Source: Wallemia ichthyophaga EXF-994
Lineage: Eukaryota; Fungi; Basidiomycota
DNA: 32,000 bases
Assembly: GCF_000400465.1 (NCBI RefSeq)
Contig: NW_008806275.1
Span: 459,656 to 491,655 of the forward strand
Direction of reading: 5' to 3'
Position numbers and translations under genes: made by a program
Shown here: positions 2,594 to 32,000 of the stretch, one piece after another
How positions within the stretch are numbered: position 1 is the stretch's first letter
Layout: each line of letters begins with the position of its first letter
Notes under the pieces: generated by a model
What the model saw: only the letters and a program-made list of their open reading frames with translations
Database searches by the model: none
What the model was told of the DNA's origin: nothing

Positions 2594-4882
2594 CTATACA
2601 GTCCTCTCAACCAACTTAATTCCCTCCAACTCAAGCTTCTCCATAATAGGTTTGTTGATATGAGCTGAGTAAGGTGCGACGATACCTCTATCCTTGAGGG
2701 TGCCATCGAGGACAAGCTGCGTGGCCACACCGCAAGGCACACCAACGAGCTTTGCCATAGCAGTGTAACCGCCTGGCGTACCGTAATCGAGGAGGGTAGA
2801 AGTGCGTGTCTCCTTACGTCCATCAGCCCAAACGATACCGAATTTATGCTGGAGCATAACCATATCTCTCTCACCCTGCTCGTATTGCATCTTCTTTTCG
2901 AGCGTTGCGCACAGTGTGTCGAGGAGGTTGCCACGTGGTGTGGTCATCTCCGTACTGAAGAGACCTATCCAGCGCAATCCTGAGAGGATACGTTCTTCCT
3001 CGCTCTTGCTTGGGAATCCGACCTTATCAACGATAGCGCGACAGAGTGTGTCTTCTGAATCATCTGACACTCCCAATGCCTTTGCGGTTACTGTGTTCCA
3101 TGGCGCACTCACTCCAGCATATTCCCTTGGTGAGTCATCCAAAAATCCTAACTTGACTAAAGCATTGATGAACTCTGGGAATCCCTGGTAGCGCAATGTA
3201 CCCCTGACGAGATTGTTACATTCAGGGATACTGTAGAAATCGCGGAATGGCGTCGAGTCACGGTTAGGGTAAGCGACGAATGCGAAGGCAGGAGAAATGT
3301 AGTATGGTTGTGCAGTAGCCATCAACTCAGGTCCAGCTACCTCTTTAGCAGCACCCTCATGGTAGAACTTGGCTGTGTTGCGGAGAGCTAACAATACTCC
3401 TCTGCTAGACCAGCTGAACTTGTAACCGAGTGGATTGTCGGCAGATTCCGGTGCAGGCAAACCTCCACAGTACGACAGGAATGTGTCTATCTTACCACCA
3501 TGTGCATGTACCTCATCGAACATCTTTACAGCGTAAAGATGATCGAGACCGGGATCGAGACCAATCTCATTCATAACTGTAATACCGGCCTTCTTAGCAT
3601 CACCCTCGAGTTCCTTCATGGCGGGGCTAACGTAGGAGGTAGTGACAACATGTGTCTTGCCCTTGATGGCAGATTTGATGACATTGGCGTGGAAAGTGTA
3701 TGGGATAAGTGAGACGACAACGTCAAATTGCGCAACGAGCTCATCGAGTGCTTTCTCATTACCCACGTCAATAGAAACAGCAGTAGCTCTGTCTAAACCG
3801 ATAGCCATCTGTTGTGCAGTTTGCAAGGTACGACAACCGATAGTGAGGTGGTTACGTGCATCGCGGAGTAAATACTCAACGGCTGGGAGAGCAACGAAAC
3901 CAGAACCAAGGAGAAGAACCTTTTTAGCCTCACCCTCAGCTTTAGCGACATTTGGAGCTACGTAACGACTGTCGTTGAGTGCAGAATCAGCAAACTGAGG
4001 CAATTGGAAAGCGCACTGGTGGATCTTTGAGTTGTAGTACTTGCAGTCAGGCACCTCTCTCAATGGCTTGCGGAGGTTACGAGAGCCATCCTTTGAGCAG
4101 ACGATGAAACCAATCTGACCAGATGGGTAGGTGGGGATGGTAGTATAAGCGTACTCAGCAGTTGCGAAAAGTTCTCTTGTAGCGAGTCTAAGAGATTTAA
4201 TGAGAGGAAGGTGTAACCAGATACATTCACCCTGAGTGGAAATGTGACCACCTTCTCTAAGGGCATTCTTGAGGAGTTCAAAGAAGGCCTTCTCAAATAA
4301 AGCAGCAGCAGGACCTTCAGGGTCGGAGGAATCGGTGATGATCACATCAAAGTAATTCTTCTTATCCTGGAGGAATTTGAAGCCATCGCCGATAAAGACG
4401 GTGACCTTTTCGTGGTTTAAAGCTTGAGCCATGTGTGGGAGATAAGCCTTTGAAACTCTCGGGACAGCTTCGTCGATGTCGCATAAAACAGCCTCCTGCA
4501 CTTGAGGATGTTTGACGACTTCACGGAGAACACCACCATCACCACCACCAATAACCAAAACTCTCTGTGGGTTTGGATGTGAGGCCATTGGGAGATGGGT
4601 GATCATCTCTTGATATGAAAATTCGTCACGCTCAGTGCATTGAACAGCACCGTCGAGGACAAGAACATTGCCGTAGGATTGAGATTCAAAAACCAAAACA
4701 TCTTGGAATTGGGACTTCTCAACGTGCAGAATTTTATTTACTTTAAGGGAGAGTGCTTGACCTGGCCATTGAGGGGATATCTCGTGGAACCAGTTGTCTG
4801 TGGGTGGGTATTAGAGGGTTATTATTGGTGTAAATATCCACACACTATTATCAATTGCAGGATGACTCAATGGAGAAGACAT
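2594..4882 (-). CDS. SPE3-LYS9: Bifunctional spermidine synthase-saccharopine dehydrogenase (reductase) fusion; 2 exons (4882-4846, 4797-2594), 746 aa
   Basis: Spermidine synthase motifs: [36 protein letters not shown]. These are fused in frame to saccharopine reductase motifs [23 protein letters not shown] and [10 protein letters not shown]. Intron 4845-4798 is 48 nt. Confidence 0.97.
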
Positions 4883-8540: not shown

Positions 8541-11021
8541 CTACTTCTTCTCTGCTTGCTTCTTCCTATAATCTTCAACCATCTTCATTTGGATGTTTGG
8601 TAAGACTGGCTGGTGGTCCTTGTACTCCATTGAGAACTCCCCTTTGCCTTGAGTGAGACCTCTGATATTCGACGAGTACCCAAACATATCGTTCAGAGCT
8701 ACTTCACAGATGAGTGTAAATTCTTCATCTCTAATCTCTGTGTCTATGATAGTACCTCTTCTTTGATTGATCCCGCCAATAACCGATCCTTGGAACTCTA
8801 TTGGAGCTACTATCTCCACCTTCATGATCGGCTCAAGAATCACTGGTGATGCTTTATGGAACGCGTCTCTGAACGCTCCAGCTGAGGTGATCCTGAATGC
8901 CATTTCAGACGAATCCACAGGATGGTGAGCACCATCTTCGACAATCATCTTCACTCCTGTCGTGTTATGTCCAGATAATGCACCTTTAGCCAGAGCGTCG
9001 TGGAATCCCTTCTCAATTGAAGGCATGTAGTTGTTAGGTATGTTACCACCAGTAACTCTATTCTCAAATCCAACGTCTTTGCCATTCTCATCCACACTCA
9101 TTGGCTCTAACCTACCAATCATCTTACCGAATTGTCCAGCACCACCCGATTGTTTCTTGTGCGTGTATGCGAACTCTGATGACTGCGTGATGGTCTCCCT
9201 GAATGCTACCTGAGGTTTACCCACTTGGCAGTCGACTCTGTACTCTCTTCTCATTCTTTCGACATAAATATCCAAGTGTAGCTCACCCATTCCGCTGATA
9301 ATTGTCTCTTGCGACTCGCTATCAACGTGCACTCTAAATGTCGGATCCTCCTTCTGGAATCTGTTTAAAGCCTTACTGAAATTTGGCGTCTCCTGTCCAC
9401 TTGGTTTGATGGACAACGACACGACAGGATCTGGTACGAACATGTTGGTCATTGTGTATGAAGTAGTGCCATCAGTGAAAGTGTCACCTGAGCTACACTC
9501 TACACCGAACATAGCGCAAATTTCACCAGCACCGATTGAGTCGACATCCTCCATATCGTTACTATGCATTCTCACCAGCCTTGGTACTTTAACCTTCTTG
9601 CCCGTGCGAGCATTGAAGATGACGCCGCCTCTCTTCAAGACACCCTGGTAGACTCTCATATATGTCAATTGACCGAATCTGCCTTCTTCGAGCTTGAAAG
9701 CGAGACCGACGAGTGCAACGTCAGATGCTGGTATGACTTGGACGGGTGGACTGTTGACTGGCAGCTTAGTATCAGTCGCTTCGACAGCGACCTCGGATGG
9801 ATCGGGCAGGTATGCACAGACACCGTCAAGCACAGGCTGAACACCTACGTTCTTGAATGCACTGCCGACATATACGGGTGTGAATTTACGCGTGATTGCC
9901 GCTCTACGTATACCAGCAGCGAGGTCGTGGTTACTGATAGGCTCCTCCATAATGAGTTTGTCTCCAAGAACCTCGTCTGCGTCACAAATTTGCTCAACGA
10001 GTTCTTGTCTCTTTTGCTCGGCGAACTGCTTGAGATCAGCTGGGATCTCATCAGTCTCGACGACATCCACACCCTTGTATCCGTGGTTGTAGATAGCCTT
10101 CCATCTCACAAGATCAACAACTCCTCTCAGATTGTCCTCTGCTCCAATTGGTACCTGCACAGCTGCAGCGTTCAATCTGAGTTTCTGTCTGATTTGGTCA
10201 ATCACTCTCCATGGATTCGCTCCTGCTCTGTCCATCTTGTTGATAAAACAGACACGAGGGACATTGTAGCGCTTCATCTGTCTGTCGACGGTGATAGTCT
10301 GCGATTGGACACCTGAGACTGCACACAGAACCAATACTGCGCCATCGAGTACTCGTAATGCTCTTTCAACCTCTATAGTGAAATCGACGTGTCCGGGCGT
10401 ATCAATGATATTAATAGCGTAGCGCTCCTTCTCGCCTCCCTCGCCCATACCGTCTTTTTCACCAGTAAGAGATCTTTCAAGAGCGGGTGGAGTAGCTTCC
10501 CAATCACAGAATGTGGCAGCCGATTGAATAGTAATTCCCTTCTCTCGTTCCAGCTCCATATGATCCATTTTGGCACCAACGCCGTCTCTTCCTCTGACCT
10601 GAATGGTGTGCGATTAGGTGGGCCTTATCTGGCGCAAGCAGACGCACCTCGTGGATATCCTTTACTCTGCCAGTGTAGTAAAGCACGCGCTCTGTGAGTG
10701 TTGTTTTTCCAGAATCTGTAATCCATTTGAGCAAATGGAGCGAGAAGACAACCAAGGCAACCCACCAATGTGAGCGGATATACCGATGTTGCGCTGTTTG
10801 CGCAATCTGGCTAGATCGATATCAGTCAACTCTACAGCTTCTGGCGGTGGTTGGTTTGATGTTGGCGCAGAAGAAGCCCATCTGAGTATATGTGATGGGG
10901 TGGCAGCAGCAGGCATAGCGCCAGGTGTGCCAATGCGCATCTGAGATACGGTGGCTCTAAGTACTCCACTGAGCGCTCCACTGCGAGCTACTCTGCTCAC
11001 TCTCGCCGCTCTGCTAATCAT
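8541..11021 (-). CDS. MEF1: Mitochondrial elongation factor G1; 3 exons (11021-10766, 10715-10648, 10598-8541), 793 aa
   Basis: Arg/Ser/Ala-rich presequence; RNIGISAHI|[41 protein letters not shown]. Introns of 50 and 49 nt. Confidence 0.97.
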
Positions 11022-11140
11022 AATGCTCGACTTGAAGGAAGAGGCGTCTAATTTGAAATTGAAAAGGGATAGAAATACAAAGTCAGGACTGTTCCATCCA
11101 AATAAAGCATTTATTATTCGTCATTTTTTGGTCTCGTTAT

Positions 11141-12738
11141 TTATTTTGATAGCGCTGAAAACACCTCTCCCGCTCTCACAGCGCCTACAGAGAGAAGACT
11201 GTCTGAGAGTCCGTGAGACTGTTCATTCTGACCAAGACAGAACACGCGTGGTTTAAACACTTCCTCACTCTCCGGCGCAACGTAGTAATTACGCTCAACC
11301 AATGGTGGCACCTTAGCGCTGGGCTCGAGTTGCGCTACAGACAGAGCTGTCTTCAGTTTAGGTAGGTATGGCGACACGTCTCGCAAAAACTCCAGCTGCG
11401 TTGGTGGACGCTCATATCCAGTTCCTAAAAAGACGGCATCATACTCTTTTGATACTGGTGTCTCAAGATTTTCACGGTCGTTAAAGTCCAGCGTAGATTG
11501 TATGTCAAGTATCGTACGCTTACCGTTGAGCTTAACGGCTGTCACTTTGCTGTTTGACTTGATGTTGTATTGCGCTGCTGGGATGGGCAGTCCTGCATCT
11601 CTGGCTATGTCCTCCTTCACCCGCTGCTTGTAAAGAAGCTTGTAGAGCCCTTCGAGAAGCTCCGGTGCAACACACGAGTAATTGGCCCTCTTAAACTCTT
11701 CTAAGCGCTCCATCCTGGCTTGTGGAGTGAGTCTGTTGAACTCATCCGTCGAAGCTGGATCGAAAGCTCTAGCATTGACGAACGGACTGTCATCAGCTGG
11801 GACGAGTGCCGAGGCTCTGTAGATAAGATCGACGTTGGCATTTGGATAGCGATTGATGAGGTCGTTGTATACCTGCCAATTTTGTCAGTCAATGTTTACT
11901 TCAGAAAATCAACCCACCTCTGCTGAGGACTGTCCTCCACCAATAACTGCAAAGCTGCCATTAAACTCTGTGTTCTCTTCATGGTGACCAAACAAGTATC
12001 TGAGTGTAGGAAGGTATTGACATGTGTGAGTTATCGCATTGTTTGCTTTTTCAGCAGTGGAGAAGACTTGTGGAATCTTAGGTATAGCGCCTACTCCGAC
12101 AGAGATGTTTCGCGTGTATCTTACGTGGATAGTCTCAGTAGGATAGTGTACCGACGTGACACGAAGTTTGTGCACCTTAGTGTCCTCAATGACTGGCTCG
12201 ACATTGAGAACGCGAGTGGAGTATTCGACCACGTCACTCAACCTTTCAGCAGCCCAAGTAAGGTATGCTGCCCATTCAGTACGAGACGGCGTCCAGCATC
12301 CGATATTCGAGAAACCGGCTAAACGATCAATACCATGAGAGTGAAGGTAGTTGACGAAGGTGTAAGTTGAAGCAGGGTTACGGAATGTTGCGAGATCCTT
12401 TAGAAAGCTAATTTGCATCCTAGATGCAGGTAATAAAAGTGGAGCATGCCTATTTTTCGGTGTCAGACAACTTTATCTTATCTGATCAGATAAAAATTAT
12501 TCCGCAGAACTCACCAGCTGAATTCATCCTTAACTTCCATAAAGAGACATTTTTCACTTTCGCTGCTGCTCTCTTCATGTGCGATAGCGAGTGCGAGATG
12601 TGTCGGACCCAGACCGACTCCAATCAAATCATATAAGCTGTCATCCTCGACGCGAGGGAAGCGCTCAATGCTTGGAATAGGCGTAGAGGGAACGCTGTTA
12701 GGTGGTGTGGTCAAGCCGCTTGGAGGTTGTGCAAACAT
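11141..12738 (-). CDS. sidA: L-ornithine N5-monooxygenase (SidA/Sid1/PvdA family, hydroxamate siderophore precursor); 3 exons (12738-12515, 12449-11918, 11872-11141), 495 aa
   Basis: FAD motif YDLIGVGLGP; W|HAPLLLPASRMQISFLKDLATFRNP; NADPH motif AVIGGGQSSAE; DDSPFVN; ANYSCV; DAVFLGTGY; HGLSDSLLSV. Introns 12514-12450 (65 nt) and 11917-11873 (45 nt). Confidence 0.93.
12478..12493. promoter_or_regulatory. Perfect 16-bp palindrome TTATCTGATCAGATAA (two overlapping ATCWGATAA iron-GATA sites) inside sidA intron 1
   Basis: Read directly from the sequence. ATCWGATAA is the established SreA/Sre1-type consensus. An extra TTATC abuts it at 12473-12477. Confidence 0.7.
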
Positions 12739-12863
12739 CGTCTGTCGTCTTCGTCAACGCTGACTTCTTCTTTATGAGAGCAGGAACTGCGAGCAATACT
12801 TACACAATCTAGAAGATCGTAAGCATTTAGGTATACTTGATGATACATACGCCTACTTACATC

Positions 12864-13083
12864 TTTATAAAATGTCCTAGGATAAGGATCAATATCAAGA
12901 AATTATCAATCTAATCACGATCAGATTTTTTTTATCCATCTGGTGCCTGGCATTGGAATACCCTATCGGCCTTTTCGGTCTATGGGCAAATTTACCGACT
13001 AAAGTTTGTCCTTCCAGGAAAATGCAAGTTCTGTGATCTGATAAGCATGTCTGATCTCTTATCCGTCTTTCGAGATAAGATAA
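12864..13083 (-). promoter_or_regulatory. sidA promoter: TATAAA plus a cluster of GATA sites including an exact ATCTGATAA
   Basis: TATAAA on the minus strand at 12869-12864. GATAA/TTATC at 12881, 12903, 12932, 13040, 13059, 13074 and 13079; ATCTGATAA at 13036-13044. Confidence 0.7.
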
Positions 13084-26525: not shown

Positions 26526-27651
26526 CTATTTCAACTCAGTCTTGAACACCAAATCCCAGAACTTGGACGTCACACCGAATCCGAGCTCGAAGTTGCCGTA
26601 GTGGTGCTTCAAGTGGTACGATTTCATCTGCTTGAGGTAATTTGGCAATCTAGTGTGATGTAGCGCATAGTGCATACAGTCATAGAGAACATAAAAGGCG
26701 AATGAGCCGGATATCACACCATTTGCTGTTGCCGTGTTCGGAAGTATCTTGTATGCCAATTGCGTGAATGGATACTGCAACGCAGTGAATAATGTTGGTG
26801 GCATAACCAATCTCAACCCGTCAGCTGGTAGGTAGTGGTGTATACCGTCTAGAGGAAAATTTTGTCAGAAGTGGTTAGATGTTGCAACATTACTTACGTA
26901 GTAAGAAGTGAAGCATAAGAAATACTGGTCTATCTGGCAAGTAGTCGTCGACGTGGAAGAGGAATCTGTGCATCCCGTATTCCAAAATTGTCCAAATAAC
27001 ATTCCCGAGTAGGAAGCATCCCAGAGTACAGAGACCACCAAGCGAGCTACCAAACTGAGTACTGAAGTCTGAGAAGCTTCTGAATGATAGATAGAGCGTG
27101 ATTGGCACCCAGATCAATGGAATAACATACCACGGAGTGACGGTGAACATTTCCAGGAAATCGTAACCAAACAGTCTAGCGCTTTTCTTGAGATGTCTAG
27201 GCTGATGTACTTGCTCCAAATAAAAGTCTTTACTGAAGTTGCTGTACCACACTTGACTAAGAAGTGGCTTACTGAGGTCGAGGAATTCACATTTCTCTAA
27301 ATCGTCCTCGATGTTGCTCTCTTTGGGCATGAAATCATCAGTCGCAACCCAATTCTCATCGACTATACGGGTCCCAGAATCGAGCTTACCAATGAGCATA
27401 TCGGACATCATTCCAAAAGCTGCAGGGGTATGTTCATGGTCTTCTTCACTATTCGTCGCTTTCATTGCTGCTTCAATATCTTTGCCAGCATATTTGAGAA
27501 TGAGGTCTTCGCCACCAGGATGATCGTGCAAGAAATCCGTTACATCGTAGATCAATCTACCTATAGTAACCCAGCAGCTCTTATCAGATTTGTGGGCCTC
27601 TACGTCTGCTCTTGTGTGAATCTTCAGTCTTCTCTGTCTGAGCTCAGCCAT
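26526..27651 (-). CDS. SCS7: Sphingolipid fatty-acid alpha-hydroxylase with an N-terminal cytochrome b5 domain; 2 exons (27651-26898, 26848-26526), 358 aa
   Basis: Cytochrome b5 motif YDVTDFLHDHPGG; His boxes EYGMHRFLFH, HFLL|HGIHH, YDCMHYALHH, YHLKHHY; FGVTSKFWD. Confidence 0.96.
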
Positions 27652-28742: not shown

Positions 28743-30610
28743 CTACTGCTCCATAGCAGACTGGATCTGATTATGTTGTTGATTATGAATGTTGAAATCA
28801 TATTGACCGAATCCCAAACCATAGTCATCGAAAGAGTTCATGTCTTCTATTCTTATGTCTTCATGTTTTACCAATGGCTGAAGCGGTGGAGGCGGTGGGT
28901 GTGAGTAATCTTCACTACCATCACTTACAACAGATGCAGATACTGCAGATGCGCTAGGCTCTCTTTGATTCGCATTCTTGTCAAACTGTAAAAGTAACCC
29001 CTGTGGTGATGAAGAGTCCGTAGTGTTTCCCTCTCTAATTGCAGTTTGAGCTGCGTTCACTGATTGGGGGTGAATTTTGCGATAATAGTCTAATTCCGCT
29101 TGCATTTCTTTCTGTGCTATTGTTTGAGCATCTACTACCTGTTGAAGATACCTGATGTAGTCAACGGACTTTCTTAAGATAACACCCTTGTTTGGTTTAC
29201 CAGCTGCAGCTGCGGCGACAGCTTGTTGCTTTTGTTGAGATTGTTGTTGTTGTTGTTGGGCACTAGTTGGCGACTGTCCTGGTTGGAGGTTCGCAACTTG
29301 GGTCTCATCCAAAGTCTCCAGTCTGCCGCTAAATGAAGATGGCAACTGATCAGGATGTCTGGGAGAGATAGGCTCGAGGAGTTGGTGGCCCTGTGAGGGG
29401 GTCTGAGATTGTTTATTAGATCTTGAGTTTGGTGGGCCAACGTCTGCGAGTAACTCCTCCGGTAACAACGTAGCCAGCTCAGCTATCCTTTCATTGATAT
29501 TGTCTCGACGTCTTCTTTCGACAGCGTTGTGTGATTCGCGTCTTCTTCTCCTCCTTTCAGTGAGAGACTCACCGGATTTAGCGTCGTCATCTCTCAAACT
29601 ATTATCTTGACCGAGTGAGGAAGGAGTAGCACCGTAATCAACAGACATTCTTCTCTGACCGTTGCTTTCGTTGTTCATAGAAGAATTAGGTTGAGGAACA
29701 GGTGGAGGAGCAGTACCAGCACCGGTACCAGGAAAAGAGTGACCCCATGGCTGGGTAGCAGGAGCAGAGCTCGGAATGAAAATGGCTTGAGCAGGCACAG
29801 GGGTACTAGATTGAGACTGAGGGGTGTTTAAGTGAGGAGCAGGACCAGAAATGCTAGCCCTGGAAGACCTAGAGCGTGAGCTTGGAGCTTTGCCGACACC
29901 ACTGGCGTTTGAAGTGGCTCTGGAGCGAGAGTGAGAATTTTCCCGAACCATGGAATTGCGGCGGGGGTAAGGCTGTGAGGAAAGGTGGGGACTTTCAAAG
30001 CCCATATCATCTGAAGCGGGACTGTTAGATTGATTATCGTAGGGATTCTGACGTTGGAAGTTGATAAGTGGGGAAGGAGGTTGTGGAGGGTGTTGTAAGT
30101 GATGATGTGGCGGTGGCTGAGGAGGGCGGTGTTGTTGCTGTTGTTGCTGTTGTTGCTGCTGCTGATTGTTGAAATTTGCAAAAGGATCGGTCTAAATAGC
30201 TCATTAGTTAGATATTTCCAAGATTAATTAAGGGCGCGGATGTAAGGGCAGCTAAATTAAGCGAGGCTTAAGCGAGGTGGTGGGGACTCCACTCCGAGGG
30301 AAAAATATGCGGGGAGACAACAAGAAAGAAAGAGAAAACTCACCTGCATCCATTGGTTATTTGTGCTTTCAGTTTGCATTAGGCTATCCAGCGTATCCGA
30401 TATGTCAAACGATGAGTGGAGGTCTCTCCAGCTATGGCTGTGGCTGTGTACAGAGCCATTGCTTGGGTGTGTTGCATGTGCATGTGGCTGCTGCTGCTGA
30501 TGTTCTTGCGGCTGAGATTCCTGTGGGCTATTGAAACCTCCCTCCTGTCTGATCTTTGGGATTGAGGACGATAACGGGTTTGAAGGCATGAAGAAACCAG
30601 AAGGTGGCAT
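28743..30610 (-). CDS. bHLH transcription factor of the TFE3/MITF/Rtg3/USF type; 2 exons (30610-30344, 30191-28743), 571 aa
   Basis: Basic-helix 1 RRRRRESHNAVERRRRDNINERIAELATLL, a long Q/A-rich loop, and helix 2 KPNKGVILRKSVDYIRYLQ followed by a short coiled coil. The 152-nt intron 30343-30192 is phase 0; poly-Q tracts are present. Confidence 0.9.
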
Positions 30611-30845
30611 TGCTCTGTGTCTTAATATTTTATTGAATTTATTTTTTATTTTCCAACTTGATGGTTTCTACCTGAGGACCCCCTCTAATTCCGGGTGGTT
30701 GGCGGCGTAACTCATTTTTTTCACACAGCGCATATTAACCGGTTGTTATGGTGAGATATATTTCAGTTATTTAAAATATATTTTATCTCTTTTTCTTTTT
30801 CAATTTGAGCATTTCAAGCAAAACTGCTCTTTATCCTTTGCGTTG

Positions 30846-32000
30846 ATGCTACTCAGGCCAGTCAGAAGATTTACAAGTCCATTGAGGCTACTCAGCGTTG
30901 TTAGATCTACAGCCACGGTATCCGCATCCAGCCAATCACAGCAGCCACCCTCCCGGCACCATCCTCAGCCTGAATTCCCGCAGCTTATTCCTTCTAGCGT
31001 ACAGACAGGCAGCTACCACCCAATCGCTCCTGATGACAGCCACAAGCGTAAAGAGGACGATGAATCTTTCGATTCCGTTGCCACAAAGCTCTCGCCAGAG
31101 ACTATGAAAGCTATCACAGTTTCACCACACAAGCATACAAAAATGTCTGCTGTACAATCTGCTATCTTCAACCTTCTCCCTGGCTTATCTGATGCCCAAT
31201 CAAATGACAGGAAAGACCTCTTTGTCAAGTCTAAGACTGGTACTGGTAAAACTATGGCCTTCTTGGTGCCTGCCATTGAAGCTAGACTTATGGCTATTCA
31301 GAATGCATTTGATTCTGCTTCTGGTTCTGATAAAGAAAAGTTTAAAGCTGGTAAACAATACGCTAATAGTACCGTTGGCGCTGTGATTATCAGTCCAACA
31401 AGAGAATTAGCCACTCAAATTGCTAACGAAGCTATAAAACTCTGTACGCATCACAAAGGCTTTCAAGTTAGACTCTTCGTTGGTGGCGCCAACAAAGGAA
31501 AGCAACTCTCAGAATTCAAAAACGGTAGAGGCGATATCATTGTTACCACCCCTGGTCGTATGAATGATGTTCTACAAACTAGTCCTATGGTTAAATCTGC
31601 TTTGAACACTTCTCCAACTGTACGTTACAATCTGCTTCACCCATCCACGCTCATACAGCTCTAGCTTATCCTCGATGAAGCAGATACTTTACTTGAAATG
31701 GGTTTTAAGGATGAACTCAATGCCATCATCGAACACCTCCCAGGTCATCCAACTCGTCAATCCGTTCTACTCTCCGCTACCCTCTCAGAAGGTATTAGAA
31801 AGGTCGCCAAATCTATCCTTAAACCAAACCATCTTTACATAGACACAGTACCAGAAGGCGAGAGCAACTCGCATGCTAAAATTCCTCAATTTTACTCTGC
31901 ATTATCATCCCCTGGCCACCAGTTACCACATTTACTTAGATTGATATCCCACGATCAGCTCACGAATCCAAAATCAAAGATAATGATTTTTTGCCCAACA
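30846..32000 (+). CDS. MSS116: Mitochondrial DEAD-box RNA helicase, Mss116-like (runs off the window end)
   Basis: Presequence MLLRPVRRF; Q motif MSAVQ; KSKTGTGKT, IISPTRELATQI, IIVTTPGRM; after the 45-nt intron 31620-31664, LILDEADTLLEMGF and LLSATL. Confidence 0.85.

Follow-up and report, generated by a model that had tools for sequence, protein, structure and literature searches.

The question raised by this locus is whether a perfect palindrome lying in a coding intron of a siderophore gene works as a regulatory DNA element, as an RNA element or not at all. Iron-responsive GATA repressors control siderophore synthesis in fungi, pathogens included. In the 32-kb window analysed here, i.e., the whole 32,000-nucleotide stretch of DNA from Wallemia ichthyophaga, the palindrome was found within intron 1 of sidA, at +246..+261 from the ATG, and not in the 5' promoter where the characterised operators of this type are situated.

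The host gene is a three-exon gene on the minus strand with a 495-amino-acid product. Exon 1 (12515..12738, minus strand, with the ATG at 12738..12736) encodes the GVGLGP dinucleotide-binding motif and is followed by exon 2 (11918..12449, minus strand) and exon 3 (11141..11872, minus strand, stop codon included), the last two being separated by a 45-nt intron 2 (11917..11873, minus strand). The product matches the Pfam family Lys_Orn_oxgnase (PF13434) with an E-value of 3e-88 over residues 35-406. The FAD motif (GxGxxP/G), present as GVGLGP, and the NADPH motif (GGGQSxAE), present as GGGQSSAE, were both seen in the translation, and the nearest named relatives in a protein search were the L-ornithine N5-monooxygenases of Punctularia, Auricularia and Exidia at about 51% identity. 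Judged by the motifs and homology that characterise the SidA/IucD/PvdA flavin monooxygenases, the gene is a true sidA orthologue coding for an L-ornithine N5-monooxygenase; the Pfam match and the homologues bear out the sequence-only reading, made before any database search, in which the host gene had been named as sidA.

Coding intron 1 (12450..12514, minus strand) is a 65-nt, phase 2 intron of the form GTGAGT...CTGAC...TAG, with the sequence GTGAGTTCTGCGGAATAATTTTTATCTGATCAGATAAGATAAAGTTGTCTGACACCGAAAAATAG, and it splits the protein at ...EFSW|HAPLL.... The intron is taken as real because homologues without it read directly through ...FSW|H..., and its retention would lead to a TGA stop at once. 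The intergenic region upstream of the gene is short, with about 590 bp from the stop of an SMC gene to the sidA ATG. A probable 5'-UTR intron at 12860..12809 would make the palindrome-bearing intron the second of the transcript.

The palindrome, TTATCTGATCAGATAA, occupies 12478..12493 on either strand and is composed of two inverted ATCAGATAA sites, one at 12478-12486 on the minus strand and the other at 12485-12493 on the plus strand, which overlap by 2 nt and have the central AT in common. Both half-sites fit the consensus ATCWGATAA at nine of nine positions. The sequence-only reading had described a perfect 16-bp palindrome of overlapping sites in the 65-nt intron, and both its sequence and its coordinates stand. 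This 16-mer is the sole match in the window even when two mismatches are allowed (0.02 expected), and the exact sequence is expected about 1e-5 times per window from the base composition. A total of five ATCWGATAA sites were found in the 32 kb against 0.83 expected, a number reached by none of the 100 shuffles. Three of these five fall into a 570-bp segment at the 5' end of sidA. The remaining two (27581 and 31185), each within an unrelated ORF, are no more than chance would give. Perfect 16-nt palindromes as such are expected 0.57 times per dinucleotide-shuffled window, and palindromy was therefore rejected as statistically remarkable in itself. What is rare is this particular sequence and the clustering of the sites, and not a palindrome of 16 nt.

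The length of intron 1 was also considered, since the sequence-only reading had called the intron oversize and roughly equated its excess with the palindrome. The first part holds, as the intron has 65 nt compared to 44-53 nt for the other sidA introns examined here, but the second does not. The orthologous sidA intron 1 sequences are 69, 52, 52, 52 and 53 nt long, and in W. hederae, W. mellicola and a W. mellicola-like contig (L012) the intron has 52 nt with the palindrome included. Only W. ichthyophaga and a relative (L093, 69 nt) have a long intron 1, and the extra bases are outside the palindrome, which was rejected as the cause of the length. The same reading had noted a third GATAA adjacent to the palindrome. 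This copy is indeed present at 12473..12477 on the minus strand, where it forms the tandem AGATAAGATAA (12483..12473) together with the right half of the palindrome, but it is specific to W. ichthyophaga: GATTA takes its place in L093 and GATAG in W. hederae, and it is absent in the W. mellicola clade. This third GATAA was consequently rejected as a part of the unit.

Orthologous loci were reached by way of the adjoining gene for mitochondrial EF-G. The Wallemia SidA sequences were observed to be buried in EF-G protein clusters by fused gene models, and a search with the SidA protein gave no Wallemia protein. Two additional strains of W. ichthyophaga (L009 and L010) were compared, together with the relative L093, which comes from a Logan assembly and whose EF-G is 94% identical, W. 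hederae (L011), W. mellicola (L001 and L002), the W. mellicola-like L012, which is a Logan contig, and an outgroup (L003-L006) representing a more distant, AT-rich, Wallemia-like metagenomic lineage (EF-G 87% identical). A scan of JGI metagenomes with SidA gave bacterial homologues only (38-46% identity) and no additional Wallemia lineages.

An intron at the same sidA codon (...FSW|H...) was found in every Wallemia or Wallemia-like locus compared. Within it, TTATCTGATCAGATAA occurs identically (16/16) in W. ichthyophaga, L093 and W. hederae, and TTATCAGATCTGATAA, which agrees with it at 14 of 16 positions, in W. mellicola and L012. The two versions differ only at the two W positions, which have changed together, so that both are perfect palindromes and both half-sites still comply with the consensus; each GATAA is preceded by an ATC extension that does not vary among the palindrome-bearing lineages. 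The combined pattern TTATCWGATCWGATAA is found in intron 1 of the five Wallemia lineages and nowhere else in the 96 loci (none of the other 89). The intronic pair accounts for the only ATCWGATAA matches in the 14-24 kb of the W. mellicola, W. hederae and L012 loci, the motif being confined to sidA among these loci.

This conservation is set against a background in which little else is retained. The four-fold degenerate sites of sidA show 35-42% identity between the three clades, which means that they are saturated, intron 2 keeps its splice signals alone and is unalignable between the clades, and the remainder of intron 1 is largely different. Comparison with the introns of sister species, which had been proposed along with the sequence-only reading as a check on it, is strongly positive in that five Wallemia lineages keep the palindrome while neutral sites are saturated. 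The comparison provides strong evidence, at the level of sequence, that the palindrome is under strong purifying selection as a unit, and very probably it is a genuine regulatory element in an unusual, intragenic place. A palindrome without function, arisen by chance and inherited from the common ancestor, could draw on the frequency of perfect 16-nt palindromes, which at 0.57 per window are not rare. Against it, the element has been kept at 16/16, or at 14/16 with its symmetry restored, through three clades with four-fold identity of 35-42% and with intron 2 unalignable, and the probability of full identity for the W. ichthyophaga-W. hederae pair alone is 0.4^16, or about 4e-7. We regard chance inheritance as extremely improbable.

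The outgroup has intron 1 but no palindrome site in it, and no ATCWGATAA was found in its 13.5 kb. A degenerate 14/16 match located upstream (L003, 7131-7146) is at chance level and was rejected. Since the intron is present without the site, the element was either gained in the ancestor shared by the three crown clades or lost from the outgroup. The alignment made with MAFFT puts the W. mellicola palindrome 5 nt off register, with its right GATAA placed onto the third GATAA of W. ichthyophaga, and this shift makes the positional homology of the two palindrome versions ambiguous. Under either history, changes that re-established a perfect dyad are required.

The consensus itself points to a class of binding protein. 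Schrettl et al. 2008 derived ATCWGATAA for SreA from the A. fumigatus SreA regulon, in which this extended and in part palindromic motif is over-represented, and it also fits the sites used in vivo by Urbs1 in U. maydis (sid1) and by Fep1 in S. pombe (str1 and fio1-fip1) (PMC2610380). In F. graminearum, SreA was found by ChIP-qPCR to occupy ATCWGATA motifs at the FgSIDA promoter (PMC10602907). The assignment of the motif to SreA/Urbs1-type factors in the sequence-only reading is in agreement with this literature and with the full fit of both half-sites. The palindrome, with its exact consensus fit, its intronic position and the strong purifying selection it has been subject to, is probably a composite intragenic operator for an iron GATA factor of the SreA/Urbs1 type. 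It would represent a selectively maintained cis-regulatory DNA element, consisting of a head-to-head pair of predicted sites some 250 bp past the sidA start codon, and the predicted binder is an orthologue, in Wallemia, of iron-sensing GATA repressors of the SreA, Urbs1, Fep1 or Cir1 class. Regulators of the SreA/Urbs1/Fep1 type carry GATA zinc fingers on either side of a Cys-rich iron-sensing region. When iron is sufficient, the sites would be expected to switch off sidA, which encodes the first committed step of hydroxamate siderophore synthesis. With the central GATC common to both 9-mers, one bound two-finger protein may hinder a second from binding in full.

A different GATA factor might also read these sites. 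Fungal GATA factors generally need clustered HGATAR sites, the nitrogen-type AreA/NIT2/Gat1 proteins prefer paired GATA cores, and a Cir1-like single-finger factor also activates. The two GATA cores of the palindrome, 4 bp apart, and the upstream tandem GATAAGATAA would suit such a need for clustering, and a link with nitrogen metabolism is conceivable as sidA uses up ornithine. The palindrome would then serve a nitrogen-type factor, or an iron GATA factor acting positively, with no iron repression involved. However, the invariant ATC extension is what separates the iron-type consensus from a plain HGATAR (PMC2610380), and the full ATCWGATAA is also found upstream of the gene in the Auricularia and Punctularia homologues. 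Binding by such an alternative factor is accordingly considered unlikely.

Further GATA-type sites were found upstream of the start codon. In a five-way alignment of the sidA upstream region, there are just two invariant runs of at least 8 nt, namely TTATCTTATCT at -345 and ATTGATCCTTA at -155. The former is the gene-strand reading of the tandem GATA element AGATAAGATAA, which lies at 13073..13083 on the plus strand (-345..-335) and is invariant in all five lineages. This tandem is expected 0.02 times per 32 kb, and in all the loci it occurs only at sidA, at the promoter position in the five lineages and once in the intron of W. ichthyophaga. A single ATCTGATAA site at 13036..13044 on the plus strand (approximately -306..-298) is common to W. 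ichthyophaga and L093 and was absent from the W. hederae and W. mellicola clade loci. The invariance of the -345 element shows that GATA-type sites are selected at sidA, and by the same comparison the sidA gene of Wallemia is bracketed by conserved GATA-type elements on either side of the start codon. The intronic palindrome probably cooperates with the tandem at -345 and, in the W. ichthyophaga lineage, with the ATCTGATAA site at -306.

This arrangement also bears on the mode of repression. The sequence-only reading had proposed an intronic operator possibly bound by a dimer and acting as a roadblock, a mechanism in which the bound repressor would stop elongating RNA polymerase II. The only features that speak for it are the dyad symmetry and a location past the ATG. 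An elongation roadblock is not indicated here. Conserved sites, including the invariant upstream GATA element, flank the start on both sides, which points to ordinary, position-tolerant repression. In addition, the family is known to work through corepressors and chromatin, and we consider the roadblock very unlikely. An operator at sidA would probably act by the usual corepressor or chromatin repression of the family, perhaps with the intronic sites looped to those upstream. A chromatin example for the family is the SreA-dependent deposition of H2A.Z (PMC10602907).

The position of the palindrome relative to the branch point was found to differ between the clades. The likely branch point of W. 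ichthyophaga, as read from the sequence, is CTGAC at 12462..12466 on the minus strand, its A, at 12463, being 13 nt away from the 3' splice site; the sequence-only reading had recognised this motif but placed it one base off, near 12467-12463 instead of 12466..12462. Its equivalent is CTAAC in W. hederae and L093 and is missing in the W. mellicola clade, where 13 nt separate the end of the palindrome from the 3' splice site. The CTGAT made by the W flip in the right arm is probably the best branch-point candidate of that clade. The earlier separation of palindrome and branch point hence applies to the W. ichthyophaga and W. hederae type but not to the W. mellicola clade, where the candidate lies inside the palindrome.

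A DNA palindrome in a transcribed intron is an RNA hairpin too, and the concerted flip of the W positions (U-A to A-U) is equally expected of a hairpin. The conserved unit might on this account act as RNA, with a pre-mRNA hairpin that tunes how intron 1 is spliced (it could, for instance, enclose the branch point or present it), and the likeness to GATA sites would be incidental. In each of the five lineages the hairpin stem can be lengthened by U-A or U·G pairs at its flanks, with pairs 7-26 and 8-25 being 100% paired, and for W. mellicola and L012 the MFE structure is precisely this hairpin, at 8 to 12 bp (z = -2.1 and -3.7 respectively). Also in keeping with a splicing role are the location of the probable CTGAT branch point within the stem in the W. 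mellicola clade and the immediate stop codon that retention of intron 1 would give. On the other hand, five of the nine hairpin pairs never vary despite saturated neutral sites, which is a signature of sequence-specific recognition and not of structure alone, and TTATCWGATCWGATAA is matched by just two out of 65,536 possible palindromes of 16 nt, and still both versions match it, in sidA. Covariation is seen for one pair and is not significant, its score being reached by 51 of 500 shuffles, the predicted folds of W. ichthyophaga and W. hederae are without the hairpin (z = -1.8 and -0.5 respectively), and no match for the intronic hairpin was found in Rfam. The upstream AGATAAGATAA independently indicates that GATA sites are selected at this gene. 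A role in RNA only is judged rather improbable.

The two functions might also be combined. The element would then be an iron-GATA operator as DNA, while the hairpin in the RNA encloses the branch point of the W. mellicola clade and couples iron control to the splicing or retention of intron 1. Such a dual role would explain why a perfect dyad was restored after the W flip, rather than mere two consensus sites, although we give it only a slight chance of being correct.

Compared with known systems, the palindrome combines a familiar site type and a familiar target gene with features that, by sequence, appear to be new, namely the fusion into a perfect dyad and the placement in a coding intron. 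The exact 9-nt half-sites are those of the fungal iron-GATA operators (SreA of A. fumigatus and A. nidulans, Urbs1 of U. maydis, Fep1 of S. pombe, Sre1 of H. capsulatum and SREB of B. dermatitidis), and sidA/sid1 as the classic target and the occurrence of multiple sites at the 5' end of the gene are likewise shared. The described operators are promoter sites, and in U. maydis the sid1 sites are situated kilobases upstream of the ATG, whereas the Wallemia palindrome lies in a coding intron at +246 and has its two sites fused as one perfect 16-bp dyad with the central GATC in common. Our literature search found no SreA/Urbs1/Fep1 operator described inside an intron, the described cases being promoter sites, and neither of the 16-mers (TTATCTGATCAGATAA and TTATCAGATCTGATAA) in print.

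Palindromic ATCWGATA sites are also present in vertebrate GATA-1 promoters (Trainor et al. 1996, as cited in PMC2610380). In such a partial palindrome, the C-terminal finger of a two-finger GATA protein reads the GATA core and the N-terminal finger reads the inverted GAT(C), and the Wallemia 16-mer contains two units of this kind. The two cases nevertheless differ in kingdom, factor and function, and the vertebrate site is a single unit as opposed to a doubled and fully symmetric 16-mer. A resemblance exists as well to the fungal intronic hairpins that modulate splicing, as a self-complementary segment is located between the splice sites, with the probable branch point inside it in the W. mellicola clade. 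In contrast to those hairpins, the stem sequence in Wallemia is invariant rather than covarying and equals the consensus of a transcription factor.

The nearest homologues outside Wallemia (in Auricularia, an Auriculariales species and Punctularia) are located in a siderophore cluster with an NRPS and an ABC transporter and, in Auricularia, with an acyltransferase too. A search with the acyltransferase of the Auricularia cluster matched no Wallemia protein. The intron at this position is absent from those homologues (Auricularia and Punctularia), and ATCWGATAA sites are found upstream of the gene in two of the three (again Auricularia and Punctularia). The upstream sites in homologues without the intron suggest that the association of the motif with the gene came before its placement in the intron, a location peculiar to Wallemia.

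If the palindrome is indeed a selected intronic operator throughout the genus, scans restricted to upstream sequence would miss part of the regulon, especially in compact genomes. The motif scan in B. dermatitidis, for instance, covered just the intergenic sequence less than 2 kb upstream (PMC2848559). The symmetric, fused double site would in addition offer a simple substrate for studying how two-finger GATA proteins occupy overlapping inverted sites. The Wallemiomycetes are an early-branching class of extremely halophilic or xerophilic basidiomycetes. Our literature search returned nothing on iron regulation or iron regulators in Wallemia, and the palindrome would provide a first concrete handle on iron regulation in this class.

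Finally, a few other features were observed in the window. The second invariant run upstream of sidA, the 11-mer ATTGATCCTTA (12883..12893, minus strand), may be a core-promoter or start-site element. The ORF at 8541-10568 on the minus strand encodes mitochondrial EF-G, with 100% identity to the W. ichthyophaga protein and 94% to that of W. mellicola. The window also contains an ORF for a Spe3-Lys9 fusion, an arrangement typical of basidiomycetes.

The minus-strand stretch at 12809-12860 is probably a 5'-UTR intron of sidA, predicted from its sequence signals as a 52-nt element of the form GTAAGT...CTTACGATC...TAG. The splice and branch signals of this candidate are kept in the relative L093 and in W. 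hederae, and an intron resembling it is also present in W. mellicola. Should the 5'-UTR intron be real, the palindrome-bearing intron would be the second intron of the transcript. Two conserved elements are found further upstream on the same strand, namely the invariant ATTGATCCTTA at 12883-12893 (position -155 relative to the sidA ATG) and the block AAAAAAAATCTGATCGTGATTAGATTGATAAT at about 12901-12935 (about -165 to -195), which is kept in four of the five lineages and contains both a near half-site, ATCTGATC, and TGATAA. This conserved upstream sequence may represent the core promoter or the start region.

Two ATCWGATAA matches were observed away from sidA, both on the minus strand. A cytochrome-b5-like ORF (26890-27651) carries one of them at its 5' end (27581-27589), and the other is inside a DEAD-box helicase ORF (31185-31193 within 30843-31664). 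Their number is in line with chance, as 0.83 matches are expected per window. The minus strand also carries an ORF of 420 aa with a helix-loop-helix domain (28743-30005); in Aspergillus, iron uptake is co-regulated by SREBP-type bHLH factors.

The AT-rich, Wallemia-like lineage represented by loci L003-L008, for which ENA and Logan metagenome assemblies are the sole sources, could represent a Wallemiales member not yet described. The gene order SMC-sidA-EF-G-MPC is retained in these loci, with identities of 87% for EF-G and 68% for SidA exon 1, and their sidA has one additional intron. No ATCWGATAA was found in them within 13.5 kb. The W|H intron is absent from the Agaricomycete sidA genes of loci L094-L096, where an intron instead follows ...FLKDLA, a position common to these genes and the L003 lineage. 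Wallemia sidA is unclustered, with an SMC gene on one side and mitochondrial EF-G on the other, whereas the homologues in Auricularia and Punctularia lie within a siderophore cluster that also encodes an NRPS and an ABC transporter. The Auricularia cluster also includes a PF13523 acyltransferase, and in the Auriculariales sp. locus the ABC transporter adjoins the sidA homologue.

In several public annotations, sidA is merged with the downstream mitochondrial EF-G gene (8541-12738, minus strand) into models of 1267-1497 aa, including proteins P0243, P0245, P0246 and P0255. Because of these fused models, Wallemia SidA proteins are placed in EF-G clusters at 90% clustering and are therefore missed by SidA protein searches. 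Separately, a gene in which Spe3 (spermidine synthase) is fused to Lys9 (saccharopine dehydrogenase) was observed at 2594-4696 on the minus strand and at 16158-20765 in L009, another W. ichthyophaga strain. The W. ichthyophaga annotation joins this gene further with an LSM14/FDF-domain gene into a model of 1428 aa, a merger that is probably an annotation artefact.
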